Below are positions 50,129-64,000 of a stretch of 64,000 nucleotides of DNA, piece after piece. Both the position numbers and the translations under genes were made by a program. Source of the stretch: Klebsormidium nitens (Eukaryota; Plantae; Klebsormidiophyceae); the NCBI GenBank assembly GCA_000708835.1, contig DF237443.1:1-64000 (forward strand), read 5' to 3'. Each line of letters opens with the position of its first letter. Within the stretch, counting starts at the first letter, position 1. Below the pieces are notes generated by a model that did not search any database, was not told the DNA's origin, and was given only the letters and a program-made list of their open reading frames with translations.

Positions 50129-51991
50129 ATGAGTGGTGCGGGTGCAGAGGTGGTCCGCCTTTTTGAGAAGGCCAGCACCGCAGCAAATGCTGCTGGAGCT
50201 GGGGACAGCCTGGTTGCAAGCGAAGAGAGCAGGGCGGCAGATGCCCTGCAGCAGCTGCAGAAGGTGGGTGACAGCCCAGTGGATGCGAGACTCTAGCTGC
50301 ATATCCCTTAAAGGACACTTCAATGTTGACTGGTTGTCGTTAAGGAGTACTGTTCCTCGTGGCAAGCTTAATATTCTTTCTTGGAAGAGTGAATTGCTCT
50401 CTTTTCGTGGAAAAAAGCAAGGACATCATGTCGAATTCGTGCGCGGAGAGGGTGGGTGACGTTGTTCCTGACGGGATTCCTGAAGATCTTGGCTTCCGGA
50501 GTGTACTGTTATATCACACAGGTTATCATAAAGTGGTTGGCTTCAAACGACTTGCTAACAAAGCCTTGTTGGCCACAAAAGACTCGCTAACAAAGCTTCG
50601 TTGCCCCACATTCCTTTTTACTCTTCTTAAGGTGGAGTATTCCCAGTTTATGTGTGCGATGCGTGCTGTGGCCCTTTCCAGCTAGATCCCTCAATTGACT
50701 GCATCGATCAAAGAGAGCCCGGATCCAGTGATCGCTCATGAAGGTTCCAACATGTAGAAAGAATTGAGCACTGGCTGAACACACTTAATGATGTAGAGTC
50801 ACTTTGCTTGAGGGTGCTGTTCTTCAAGTTTAAACAGTATCTCGCAGCTCATTAAGTGGACCCCCTCATCAGGACTGGTTGCCCCTTTGTGCCAGGTGTC
50901 CATCAGCACTGCTGTCCTGGTGGAGACACAGGTGGCCAAGAAGGTGCGCCGCCTGATCAAGCACCCCAGCCGCAAGATCAGCGCCGCGGCGCAGGCCCTG
51001 TTAGACACCTGGAAAAAGGCAGTGGTCGCAGAGGGACCTGCCAAGTCAGCCGCCACTCCGCAGGTACCAAATGATGCTCCTGACAGGGCGCAGCCAAATA
51101 CAAACGAGGGCAATTCGGTTGGGAAGCCCATGGGGTCAGCCACCGACGCAGGAGCCCTCCCTGAGGGGGAGTTGGCGGAACCCCCCTCTCCTTCTGGAGC
51201 AGCCGCGGAGACGCCAATGAGTCGAGCCGTGTCACGGGAGGAGGTGGAGGCAGCACTGGCCGGCGTAGAGGTGATCGGGGTTGAGCTGCGGGACAAACTG
51301 CGCGGCAACATTGTGGAGGCGCTCATGATGGCGCAGGTGGATGCCAGGACGTGCGCGTGCAACGCAGTGGCGGTGGGCACGGCGGTGGAGGCGGAGCTCT
51401 ACAAGCAGTTTGTGAAAGACGCGCGCGACATGAGCCTCTACAAGGCCAAGTACCGCTCCATCCATTTCAACCTCAAGGACAAGAATAACCCGGATCTCCG
51501 GAATAGGTCAGTTACGCTGCAGGGCCCTCGGGGCACAACTCCAGTGGTTATCTGAGCTCTTTGGTCTGCCCACGTCTCTACGATGAGAAACGACCTGAAG
51601 AGCGTATTACTTTAATATCGTCCTCAAGTGATTGGCTCAAAGAATCTGACCTTCCTTTGCATGGGCGGTTGAATCCGGTTGATTGACATAACATTTGGTA
51701 TGTGTGCGCAGAGTTTTGACCGGCGGTGTGAGTCCAGCCCGTCTGATGACCATGACGGCAGAGGAGATGGCGAGCGACGAGAAGAAATACCAGATCAAGC
51801 TGATTCGAGACAAGGCCATGTTTGAGGCGGACCGGTCCATGAAGAACGTGGCCAGCACCGACCAATTCAAGTGCGGCAGGTGCAAGCAGCGCAAGTGTAC
51901 CTACTTCCAGATGCAGACGCGGAGTGCGGATGAACCCATGACAACGTTTGTAACATGTACAGTATGTCAAAAACGGTGGAAGTTCTGTTGA
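50129..51991 (+). CDS. TFIIS: Transcription elongation factor TFIIS; exons 50129-50263, 50896-51506, 51712-51991
   Basis: N-terminal domain (ETQVAKKVRRLIKHP...LLDTWK), domain II (YKAKYRSIHFNLKDKNNPDLR), Zn ribbon CGRCKQRKCTYFQMQTRSADEPMTTFVTCTVCQKRWKFC with the catalytic DEP. Confidence 0.97.
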
Positions 51992-58000: not shown

Positions 58001-61000
58001 TCGGGTGAAGACGCCTCTAACGGGGCTCAGCTTGCAAGCGGGTCCCGGAGAAGCCTGGCTCGTTGTGGGTCGGATTAGACATCAGCCCGGACAACATGCA
58101 ACGTGCTGAAGTACTATTCGCCCGCGCCTTCGGGGAGTACTTCGAAGAGTGCTCGTCTCCCCAACTTCTTGGGGAGACCGTTCCCCCAGTTGTACGGGCA
58201 GAGATGGACGCCTACTCCCCCATGCAGCGCTTTCTCTACCTCAAGGACGGCTATTGGGCCCTCTCTCCGCAACTTCTATTGGACCACGGGATCAAAATCC
58301 ATCTGATGTAAGCCTCCTTCTCGTTGCTGTTTTTCTCTCGCACCCTTCTCGTTCGAGCTCAATGATAGCGTTACCGTGATGATCAATAGGTGACCATCAA
58401 AGTTCGTCTTATAGCTTTACCAACCAAGGGTATAGGCACACATCTTTCGGCTACAGAAGCTCCAAAAAGTACTCCGCCATGACTCAAGAACGTGCAACAT
58501 TTGATTAGCCTTCAACTACTCTTGTCCAACTTGTCGGCGCTAGACGGTGATCCCAAAGTGATGGCATCACTGCTTCTGTGCTCAAGAATCCAGTGTTAGG
58601 TCGCGGAATTGCATTGAATTTGCCCTGGCCTACATGCCACCGGCTATCTATGCACTTTCCCGCTGTTACGCAGGTGGCAGGAGGCAGGGGACATCGCCCT
58701 GAACGGAGCGCACAAGAATCACTACGTGGTTTCGCCTGGAAAGACGCTGGCAGTGGCTTTCAACGTGGGACATGGAGAAGGTGTTGCGACCTGCACACCT
58801 CCCCACAACCCCGTCGAGCGGACAACCCGGTTCTTCGCCAAGAAAAGTCTGGGCCACTCCTGGACTGAGTACTCGTGGCTACAAGGCTGGAACCCGTGGA
58901 CGTTCCTAGAAGCGGTGAGGCGTCCTAAACACGTGTGCATTGATCCTCAGGAAAGTATGCAAGTAGTCTGCGGGGTTTCAGAAGAAGAATTGTTTCCTTT
59001 GAAAAGTCTGGATCGTCTGGTGGAATTTCAAGCGTTCATGTCAATCTCGAACATTTGTCCACAAGTGCCATCGCAAGGGGCAACTGAATCGATGTACGAT
59101 ACTTCGAAACAAATGCACATCGGCTGCTTTGCGCGTGGAACTCTGCTGGAAAAGAAACGCACACACAGCTTTTTTGCGGCAGGCAAAGAGAGCTAAGGTG
59201 TGCCTCACTAGTCCTCATGGTGTTGCCGCCCCGTCGACCTCAAAAGTCAAACCCTGAAAGCGGTCATGGGGACTTGACTGCGCAGGTGTTCAACAACAGC
59301 TTCACCGACAATCTGTCCAGCCCCGCAGTGGCGGCCACCTACCACCACGGGTTGCTGCAGTACGCACGGGGGGAGATCGGCCTAGCGGATCAGCCTTGGT
59401 AAACGCTTCTACTCGTTTTTCTGACTTCAGCCGAACCCAGGCCATGTGCAGAAAGGCGAGCAATACGATCAAAGCCTTAACAATTCGTTTGCTTTTGGGC
59501 GGGTCAAACGGATCAAGGGACTGTGCAGAATCTGATTCGCGGTCGGGTCGAACGGATCAAGGGACTGTGCAGAAATCGAGTGGCGGGCGGTCAAACGGAT
59601 CTAGGGACTGTGCAGAAATTGACTTGCGGGTGGGTCGAACGGAGTAAAGGCCAGCAGAAACTGACTCGCGTGAAGCATTAGCTGTGCTTTCCGTTTGTCC
59701 TCCTGGCTTGGTGAAGATTGATTTACGCATACTTGATGAGGACGTGGCATACCCTCGCCAAAACCAAACACGGACGGCGACAGTTTTCTGGAATCTACTA
59801 CTTCACTTCTATCTACTTGAAATGAATCTCTCTGAACACCCCTGCTATCGTACCTGAATACCCCGTTCATTCGCTAGGTTTATCGACATTCTAAAGCGCT
59901 TGGAAAAGCGTTCAGAAGTCGCTGCTTCCAAGGAGGTGACGGTTGTGGCTTCCGGATCCGTTGCTTCTCCAGGAACCGAGTTGCCTTCCACCAGGTAATC
60001 CATCACGGTCTATACAAGTTTGGGACAGAGTTTCTGAGTTTAACCATCTCTACATTTGGTGCCCTTGATCTCTAAGGATGTCTCAAGGATTGACGTTGCA
60101 CGACCCACGTTATATTGGTCAATCACGTGTGCGTCGCGGTACGCTATGCGGCAACTAGACACAAGTGCTTCGCACAGATTTGGTTGCTTTAATAGCAAGC
60201 GTCACAGGCTGTTACCAACCAGAAGCGCCTGGTTGAAATAGGGAGCTCTTAAAAAGGGCTTGCTAAAAGCCCCCCGGCCTGTCGCCTACTACTGCTTGAG
60301 TCACCTTGCCCTAACGCCCGCCTTTGGGGCATATCCCCGGAGCTTCGGAAAAAAGGCTTAAAACAGGCGCCGTTCACTAGCACTGGAGCCGTTTGCGCCC
60401 TGCCAAAACGGGCGCTGGCAGCGGGGGACAGCTCGGAGCATCGGATTAAGAGGCTCGACAAAGCCCCTGCACGATAGCTCATACGTCCGGTTGCCCGATC
60501 TTTTTGGTAAGGACACAAAGCTTTAACTTGCTTTCGTTTTTACTGCAGTGAAACGAACAACTGCGTGCGCGGCGCTTCGGAAGGAATGCTGCAGATGGAC
60601 AAGTCCGGGCCAGCCGTCGACGAACCTGCCGCCGCGCAGACCACCGCCAAGTAAGTCCGGATTCATTTACAAGCAGTCACAACTATATCAACGGGAAAGT
60701 CGACAGAGGCTGTGCACAAACTGATTGATAGCGCTCGCATCTTAGAGTTCATGCAGACAGGTTAAACCCGATCGCTTGGTATCACGGCCTGTTCGTCATC
60801 ATACGCGCTCCCTGAATCTGGTCGCCATGAGAAGCATCGTTTCATTTGTTGCTGGAGATTATTTAACGTCGCCGTCCAATAGAGAAGAGCCGCGGCCATG
60901 TACATGTATAACGACAAATTGCCTTTGCAGACCCCCCCCACAAGCATCCGGACCCGCGACAGCAACACGCCGCGGCAACATCATGCCGCTCGTGGACGAA

Positions 61001-63663
61001 CGGCCGGCCAACACGTGAGTAAACCGGACAACTTCCCTGAAGATAAACTGTTCTGAAGGTCAATGAAGGGTGACCTTACAAATCGTTTCGAACCTCGTTT
61101 TCTGCTCCATCAAGATGCAATCTGGGTGTGATCGACCGGGTTGCGCCCGCTTCCTTCAGAACAATGCTGAGTATTGAGTAAGTTCCAACCACCTTCGGGT
61201 CTTTATTTCTTACATATGGAGGGCGGTGACGATGGAGTATTTGTTCAAATATGCGGTGCAATCCATCTGAAGTTCTCCCGCCTTGGAACAGTGCTCAGCA
61301 AGGACTATGCCTTAATTGATTGAGAGGAAGCTGTTTTCGAACCGTTTGCAAAGCTTCGCGGTCATAGATTACTAAACAACAGTTTTCTTATGCAGTTCCC
61401 TCCTCAAACCAGCCTGCTTGGCGTCGCGTTCACGCCCGGGCAGCACTAAGCTTCTCGTCGATGTACGGGCGGCCAACAGGTTCGTTACCTAGCAACAAAG
61501 TTGCATTGTGCAACGAAAAATGACCTTTCAAATCCTGCCACGCCCTCCTGTCCGCTCGAAATGGTGGCGGCAGCCAGTTGGAGATCGATAACTGCACTTT
61601 AAGGGTTTTAGAGTTTGCATACGTTTAATTGTGCCCTAGCTTCCGGTGTGACATGAATTTCGTCGGGAATTTTGACTGAGGGGAAAGCGGAGCTCGTTTT
61701 GTCACCCGTCTCAGGCTCAAGTGGGCACCGTGCGGAAAAGCTCGTCCGGATAACCGGAACGGTCACTTGAGCGAATGACAACCAAGCAATTCGGAAGCAG
61801 GCACAAAGCTCAAGTTGCCATCTCGTTCTTGGTGCAGTGGAACAAACAACTTGATGGTGGGCGCTGCAGAAGGAACGTTGCAAGCAAACACGTCCGGGAC
61901 AGCCGTCAACCAACCTGCTGCTGCGCATACAACGGCCAAGTGAGTATGATTCATTCACAAGCACACGTAGCTCATGCAAACAATTACTGCCCAGGGCGGC
62001 TTGCGGTGCGCCGTCACAATAGGGCCCCCTTTCGAACATCGTTGACCAGTCAAAGCGCTCTGGATCTATGTACGCCTCCCCAAAGCGCCTGGCCCATGAG
62101 GTTGCTAATTGAAGAGTAGACGATAGAGTAGACGATAACGCTCGCTTTTTCGAGATCAAGGCTGGGCATGCATTCAATGTCAGCTACCTTAGGGCCAAAT
62201 ATTCAGTATCCGTCTTTCACATGGGAAGACCTGATCGGTCTTTTTTCGTGAGCATACGCTCCTGTAACTCTTTCTAGCAAGTCGCACTATTTCGCCTAGA
62301 AAGCAGTATTCCATTCTTCTGCTGAAAAGGTACCATCTTCGTCTCGAAACTAAAGCGTCAAGGTGGGACACAAGTACGACGGTTGTTCTGTGCAGTGACC
62401 TTTTGGAAGCAGCCGGCCCGTTGACACGAGCACGGCGCCGCAACAACCCCATGCCGCTGGTGAATGAGCCGCCGACCGACAGGTTTGTGAACTCCCCTTC
62501 CCAACACAGTTGGACAGCTACGAAAGTTTGACATGGACGTCATCAAAGGGTGACTTTTGTTAATCTTGCAGGCGGTTTCCTTCAGTCGGGTGGCGGCCTG
62601 TGTGAGACCGATAGCGCCATCTTCGTTAAGATCGAATAAACTTGATTCAATGAGAAATTTCAACACATGAAGTGACCTGAATACGGCTTCCTATTTTCCA
62701 CTTACGACCAAGTTGCCAGGTTTGGAAGGCGATCTTTCTCGGTCTCTTCCGTTCTCTAAGAAGGCAACTGACTTTCGTCTGTTTCGCTTACAGTGCTACG
62801 GTTGTTCTGGCGGGAGAAGGGGCACGGGAGGACGCATCCGGGCCTGCTGTCGACCTTGCCGCCAAGAAGCCGTCCGTTGCGAAAGCGGCTACTAAGTGAG
62901 CTTGCTCCGAAGCACTGCAGTGCAAGCTAGCGGGACTCAAACCGCATAACGCAAGGTCGATTCTTGAAACGGCTCCCTCGAACTTCCCATGCAGCTTAGA
63001 TGCTTAGACTTTTTCTGTCATGCCCATTATGCAGATCTGAAACAAGGCAGCCCACGCACATCCGGTTCGACATGGACTCGGAGGATGAACGAGCAGAGGA
63101 GACCGGGTACGCCGCTCGTCAACGCTCTTTGCCTCGTTGGGCCTCGTTGGCATCCCTTTTTGTGTCCTAAAAGCTTTGTAACTTGCGGTACGTTCACAAT
63201 ATCTTGCTTGTAGTGTTGTTCGTCTCGCTTTTTAACGAGTCGGAACGCTTGACCGCCTTCTCATGGGCCGCGTGTTGAAAGGGCAATGAGAAAAAGTCCT
63301 GGGAGCCCATCTGCCTTGAGAGCCCTGCAATTCGGGCGCGCTGAAAGTTCTTGACAGCTCGGCCCTCCAAAAAAACGGAGCCGGACGAACGAGCACCACG
63401 GACTGTCGGCTGCCTGCCCCGGCTTGTTAAAATGGCGCGCCCATTGCGGGCGTTGTTGCTTTGTTCTGGATCACCGTCTTCCGCAATATGTCCATCAATT
63501 CATATCTAAGGAAGCAACACATTTGCTCGTCCATTTGTTTTTGCTTCAGTGGCACGTATGATTTGGCGGCCAGAGCAACGGAAGTAGTAGTGCGGGAGGA
63601 CACCTCGGGGCCCAGCGTTGATCCCGCTGCCAACCAGCCAGCCGCTGCCAAATCGACCTCCAC
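55067..63663 (+). CDS. Multi-exon JmjC-domain protein (KDM6-like motifs) with repetitive exon-cassette tail; continues to or past the window end
   Basis: Phase-consistent exons 55067-55239, 55851-55950, 56306-56804, 57303-~57461, 58031-~58313, 58674-~59066, ~59286-59398, then symmetric exons 59878-63663. JmjC ligands H-x-E (WGHFEMNG) and distal H (KNHYV) are intact. Confidence 0.75.
59497..59650. repeat. Intronic minisatellite, ~44-bp period, ~3.4 copies
   Basis: Core GGGTC(A/G)AACGGATC(A/T)AGGGACTGTGCAGAA at ~59501, 59545, 59588 and a partial copy at 59632. Confidence 0.9.
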
Positions 63664-64000
63664 GTGAGCTCGCGTTTGTTTCGGAATCGCTGCAGCGCAA
63701 CTCCAGCACGACGATTTTGAGGCTCCTTTTAAGGCTCTATCTTAGTGCTTGGGTTCTACTGTCATGCTCTTTTTGCAATGACGACCAAGGTACCATCTGC
63801 ATGTCCGTTTTACCACGGGAATCCGAAGATGAAGCAACAGAGGATACACTGTACGCCGCCGATTGGCAGGCAGCCCTTACACGACTTCATGGAGAATAGG
63901 TCTTGACAAAGCTAATGCTGCAAATGGAGGACCATAGGTCATTACAAAGCAGCTGCTGTTGTTGGGTGGAAGCTGGTCTTAGCACAACTCACTGAGCCGT

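Follow-up and report, generated by a model that had tools for sequence, protein, structure and literature searches.

The region at ~59.8-63.7 kb of the window analyzed here, which comprises positions 1-64,000 of contig DF237443.1 of Klebsormidium nitens and is thus 64,000 nucleotides long, holds an array of nine short exons, made up of two families of cassettes, here termed A (A1 to A4) and B (B1 to B3), and of two further exons, X1 and X2. We regard it as likely that these nine exons code for part of the product of the gene KFL_004940130, in an array that grew by tandem duplication of DNA segments and that probably specifies an unstructured stretch of protein.

The nine exons were found where a first-pass annotation of the sequence had placed them, with AG before and GT after each (Table 1). 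Their acceptors read CAG in eight of the nine cases and TAG in X1, a pyrimidine-rich tract precedes every one of them, and all nine lengths are divisible by three. At the offset of +1, where the first base of an exon completes a codon started in the preceding one and the introns on either side are of phase 2, every one of the nine exons is open. This holds for no other offset, stops being present in six and in four of the nine exons, respectively, at the remaining two, although several exons are also open in one further frame. Ten phase-2 introns follow each other in succession, and 279 consecutive open codons would be expected by chance with a probability of ~1e-5 at the stop frequency of the local introns, a figure that is partly circular because the exons had been chosen as open. 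Splice signals, coordinates and open frames hence confirm the original description of nine exons flanked by phase-2 introns and measured in multiples of three, and the further proposal that the frame survives the omission of any cassette is borne out by the absence of stops among the 36 possible exon-to-exon junction codons. Retention of the nine introns located between 59399 and 63549 (from that before X1 to that before A4) would bring in an in-frame stop at the second codon in six of them and within 4 to 21 codons in the others, a phase-2 intron with a GTAAG or GTGAG donor giving, if retained, an immediate in-frame stop (xxG TAA or xxG TGA).

When a profile built from cassettes A1 to A4 was run against 1.84 billion representative proteins, a single real match was returned (expectation value, E, 7.7e-62, in four matched stretches). 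This match, GAQ89181.1, is a 667-residue 'hypothetical protein KFL_004940130' of K. nitens, encoded on a contig of 71,195 bp. Five other matches were obtained with E above 4e-5, and the four of these that were inspected proved to be repeat proteins of other kinds, with nothing but a short TSGPA or SGPSVD motif in common with the cassettes; none of the five was accepted as a relative. On the window, GAQ89181.1 comprises three leading exons (model exons 1 and 2 and exon E0 in Table 1), followed by the nine exons of the cassette region in the order described here; the residues at its junctions are those computed independently from the exons of the window, and its residues 442-667 are encoded beyond the window. 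AUGUSTUS produced the nuclear gene models of K. nitens, SPALN being used to map assembled transcripts (PMC4052687). Given this origin, GAQ89181.1 reads the same splice sites independently but does not prove splicing, and expression of the cassettes is inferred. All whole-length analyses used this public protein alone. No Pfam match was found for any of the cassettes or for E0, and searches of Pfam, PDB and Rfam with GAQ89181.1, the upstream open frames, the predicted intron between model exon 2 and E0 and the minus-strand open frames returned nothing.

The cassettes of each class are clearly related to each other at the nucleotide level. Local alignments scored against shuffles yield z-scores of 27 for A1-A2, 13.7 for B1-B3, 9.4 for B1-B2, 8.8 for A3-A4 and 6.3 for A1-A3, and the same pairs are recovered by a blastn self-comparison (E 3e-25 to 2e-3), with tblastn between cassettes giving E values of 2e-9 to 1e-3. 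Homologous cassettes differ in length by whole codons only. The core motif SG[PT][AS]V[DN] is present in all four A exons, but the trailing '..AA' that had been described as part of it is confined to A1 and A2; the motif proposed for the B class, [PL]LV[DN]...[AT][ND], is present in all three B exons. Treating A and B as one family was considered but is not supported, as a profile-profile comparison aligns P-x-V-D alone (E 0.22), and a fifth A-like stretch, at residues 499-509 of GAQ89181.1, was set aside, its similarity being without significance. On both strands, the remainder of the window is free of further cassette copies, and it contains no second copy of the 55-64 kb region.

The similarity between cassettes extends into the introns. 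A1 and A2 are 75.6% identical over 164 nt, which include ~35 nt of the intron before and ~25 nt of that after the exon. In a similar manner, the introns that follow B1 and B3 match each other (61059-61189 to 62539-62664) with a z-score of 5.1, and the intron before X2 (62958-63033) matches positions 63712-63777 with a z-score of 8.1, in an alignment that reaches the acceptor. The offsets between partners are colinear and shift smoothly, through 1288, 1407, 1465 and 1480 in the first pair of units and through 768, 754 and 744 in the second. Homology into the introns and colinear offsets indicate that the duplicated units are two-exon DNA segments together with their introns. Hence, of the exon-level tandem amplification put forward in the first-pass annotation, the tandem amplification stands, but its unit is not the single exon. 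The array grew by nested unequal tandem duplication, with A1-B1 corresponding to A2-B3 and A3-X2 to A4-X3, and with B2 as an extra local copy of the B class. X3, the last member of this series, is an additional X2-like copy that had been overlooked and that appears, along with the cassette pairs, in the self-comparison for which the first-pass annotation had called. A residual similarity that had been claimed between introns at ~60800 and ~62250 could not be reproduced, a weak match of 60727-60751 to 62134-62158 (p ~0.013) being found instead.

In the blastn self-comparison, positions 63818-63859, within and just beyond X3, match the 3' half of X2. X3 has CAA at the position of the CAG acceptor of X2 and is absent from GAQ89181.1, and an AG at 63744-63745, 33 nt upstream of X3, would give an exon of 105 nt, open and in frame. 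X3 would be a cassette that died recently or an optional one that is missing from the annotation; it may have dropped out of the annotated model through loss of the ancestral acceptor.

An array of this kind would be built by repeated unequal tandem duplication of ~0.75-1.4 kb segments that each hold a pair of exons with the associated introns, one such duplication giving rise to A1-B1 and A2-B3 and another to A3-X2 and A4-X3. The founding exons would have been located between phase-2 introns and would have had lengths divisible by three, a symmetry then passed to every copy, and copies falling out of frame would have been lost, since they would destroy the downstream protein (226 or more residues). 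Because duplicates keep the phase of their flanking introns and out-of-frame copies fail, both the skippability of the cassettes and the preservation of their frame are by-products of this process; the symmetric phase is inherited and needed for the downstream frame, and it shows no sign of design.

The same symmetry might be read as the mark of regulated combinatorial splicing, by which cassettes would be included or skipped in order to tune tail length or motif number, as in titin PEVK. Exons that are all of the 2-2 type and skip junctions that are free of stops are necessary for such a system, but not sufficient, and X3, which is compatible in frame, lies outside the model and has a possible in-frame alternative acceptor, could be accommodated by it. 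The symmetry is, however, fully explained by duplication within phase-2 introns; moreover, the sole model, GAQ89181.1, has all nine exons, the splice sites of the array are canonical throughout and include no set that is obviously weak, and isoform-like fragments are absent among the 1.84 billion representatives, all of which makes regulated splicing quite improbable. A more elaborate proposal, according to which the array is a differentially spliced module for tuning length or motif number, with X3 as an optional tenth cassette, in a very large composite gene borne by a mobile element of this streptophyte alga and encoding a chromatin and ubiquitin enzyme whose tether could be adjusted by splicing, strikes us as more improbable still.

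The array had been described as the tail of a JmjC protein, and the public AUGUSTUS model does join it to a JmjC-like part, although JmjC itself was not recovered by Pfam or PDB. A Pfam search for JmjC (PF02373) with GAQ89181.1 and the upstream open frames yielded no family at E up to 10, the gathering score not being reached, and phmmer against PDB gave no JmjC chain for these same sequences. The assignment comes from the language-model features of the ESM Atlas, which serve here as a lead: among the clusters matched by residues 1-153, the top ten of those that are named are JmjC without exception (score 0.90; 173 features in common), and the clusters resembling these residues include C-terminal ones of KDM6. 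The resemblance of the first 153 residues of the model to KDM6 (UTX/JMJD3)-type JmjC demethylases lies in these features; unlike such enzymes, GAQ89181.1 starts inside the domain and has no sequence match in Pfam or PDB. The tail is thus only tentatively attributed to a JmjC protein.

The link between the JmjC-like part and the tail depends on a single predicted intron (58915-59285). Were this intron retained, the frame would stay open for 93 codons up to a TAA at 59194-59196 (chance ~0.008-0.02), and a second frame is open from 59088, with an ATG at 59217 in frame with exon E0; a word search with 59088-59399 gave no match. Three structures are possible for this interval, namely the splice predicted by AUGUSTUS, a tail-less JmjC-like product accompanied by a separate tail product, and an old exon broken by a frameshift. 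The second of these treats the cassettes as real exons and places the end of the JmjC-like gene at the TAA, the tail being a separate gene or an alternative product started at the ATG. The length of the open frame past the donor argues for it, as does the fact that the frame of the ATG runs through the AUGUSTUS acceptor into E0. On the other hand, the donor GTGAGG is good and the acceptor ctgcgcAG fits the local gcAG pattern, and the gap of 20 nt between stop and ATG would be unusual for two eukaryotic genes. We consider a separate tail possible though rather unlikely, and note that it is compatible with the best explanation of the array itself.

Regarding the product, the cassette region is composed of 17% Ala, 10% Thr, 9% Ser and 8% Pro, with 60% disorder-promoting residues, and a single-sequence AlphaFold model of GAQ89181.1 presents no secondary structure over residues 170-575, which lie between helices at 103-169 and 576-632. 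These predictions suggest that a stretch of roughly 290 residues, rich in Ala, Thr, Ser and Pro, is probably unstructured. It would be flanked by the JmjC-like part on its N-terminal side and by a region of predicted helices on its C-terminal side, a setting in which a disordered tether is plausible, and the A and B motifs may be repeated docking motifs on such a flexible tether.

Several results weigh against the view that the cassettes are coding exons of KFL_004940130 specifying an unstructured stretch. GAQ89181.1 has no relatives in protein searches and in a metagenome scan, and no Pfam domain; word searches with its residues 117-520 and 1-153 recovered the protein itself only, and no paper in the literature names KFL_004940130. 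The ratio of nonsynonymous to synonymous substitution rates (dN/dS), for which a comparison among cassettes had been recommended, is 0.12-0.48 among A cassettes, which favors coding exons, but almost neutral, at 0.66-0.86, among B cassettes, and the differences by codon position (39/34/49) include no significant excess at third positions (p 0.24). The charge-hydropathy test puts the cassette region on the ordered side, and the AlphaFold model is of low confidence throughout (mean predicted local distance difference test score, pLDDT, of 36.6) and so at most suggests disorder. The disordered tail of the first-pass annotation accordingly retains low complexity and predicted coil in its favor, but not the charge-hydropathy test or a confident model. 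Judging from dN/dS and codon-position counts, selection seems to act mainly on the frame and on a few motif residues; constraint on residues seems weak, the well-kept positions being S-G-P-x-V-D in A and P-L-V-D in B only.

Some of these same results would also be expected of a decaying or non-functional relic, possibly the remnant of a mobile element, through which AUGUSTUS threaded an open path and whose cassettes are untranslated today. An orphan devoid of Pfam domain and relatives, near-neutral dN/dS in the B class and the lack of a codon-position signal would all suit such a relic, and an old exon disrupted by a frameshift would account for the 93-codon intronic frame and its overlap with the second open frame (59088-59196). 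It is harder to reconcile with decay that ~280 codons are open in the window and 226 more in the model, that the splice sites of the cassettes are intact in 20 of 20 cases with indels in frame only, and that the frames of retained introns close within 1 to 21 codons while the exons stay open. We hence judge a relic to be unlikely, and favor coding exons of KFL_004940130 as the reading of the array.

The features of the region are collected in Table 1. Two further observations concern the array and its introns. An open frame of 189 codons on the minus strand (61608-62177), antisense to cassette A2, has no Pfam match and probably arose by chance in DNA that is rich in GC, and the intron before X1 contains a tandem array with a 44-bp period (59497-59643; 3.4 copies, 84% matches), which is seen as a self-match. 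Elsewhere in the window, positions 50887-51991 hold a gene for a TFIIS-type elongation factor, with at least two exons and with Med26/TFIIS N-terminal, TFIIS central and zinc-ribbon domains.

Table 1. Exons, cassettes and associated features of the KFL_004940130 region, in order along the window.
Feature	Coordinates	Strand	Length (nt)	Remarks
Model exon 1	58204-58307	+		Residues 1-35 map at 100%; starts at Met inside JmjC-like region; phase-2 intron after
Model exon 2	58674-58914	+		JmjC-like C-terminal strands, by language-model features only; donor GTGAGG, phase 0
Predicted linking intron	58915-59285	+		Donor GTGAGG, acceptor gcgcAG
Exon E0	59286-59398	+		Phase 0 at start; donor TG/GTAAAC (slash marks the exon end) opens the run of phase-2 introns
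X1	59878-59994	+	117	Phase 2-2; unique; first half predicted helical
Cassette A1	60549-60650	+	102	
Cassette B1	60931-61014	+	84	
Cassette B2	61396-61479	+	84	
Cassette A2	61838-61939	+	102	
Cassette B3	62396-62482	+	87	Partner of B1
Cassette A3	62794-62895	+	102	
X2	63035-63106	+	72	Acidic
Cassette A4	63550-63663	+	114	Partner of A3
X3	63779-63850	+	72	Unannotated copy of X2, of like length; open phase-2 frame; donor GTACGC as in X2

The exons reported here are already in GenBank, and both the kind of feature and the mechanism are ordinary. The PEVK region of vertebrate titin contains dozens of tandemly duplicated, short exons (about 75-84 nt) that agree in phase and specify an unstructured spring rich in proline; each of these exons can be left out in frame, and their differential inclusion has been documented by complementary DNA (cDNA) and has a known mechanical role. 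The K. nitens array shares with it the short duplicated exons of one phase and their in-frame skippability, but it comprises nine or ten exons of unrelated sequence. Tropoelastin and fibrillar collagen also possess cassette-like exons with lengths in multiples of three, the same codon split, an origin by exon duplication and low-complexity repeats. They resemble the K. nitens array in exon lengths, in the use of a single phase, in origin and in the low complexity of the product, and differ from it in that their phases are 1 or 0, instead of 2, and in that they are extracellular structural proteins with far more regular repeats. More generally, tandem exon duplication has reportedly been treated by Kondrashov and Koonin in 2001, and by Letunic, Copley and Bork in 2002, as a source of internal repeats and of alternative exons. 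The adjacent homologous exons of nearly equal size, the kept positions of the splice sites and the unequal recombination that includes intron DNA are all features that the array has in common with such duplications, whereas the classical cases are often mutually exclusive pairs and the K. nitens model includes all copies together.

The K. nitens array thus provides a small and clean example of how a low-complexity linker can grow through nested duplications of two-exon segments within introns of the same phase, and one in which the in-frame skippability of every exon is an outcome of origin and not evidence for regulated splicing. The array would matter more if the use of its cassettes proved to be variable, or if the gene turned out to belong to a composite mobile element.

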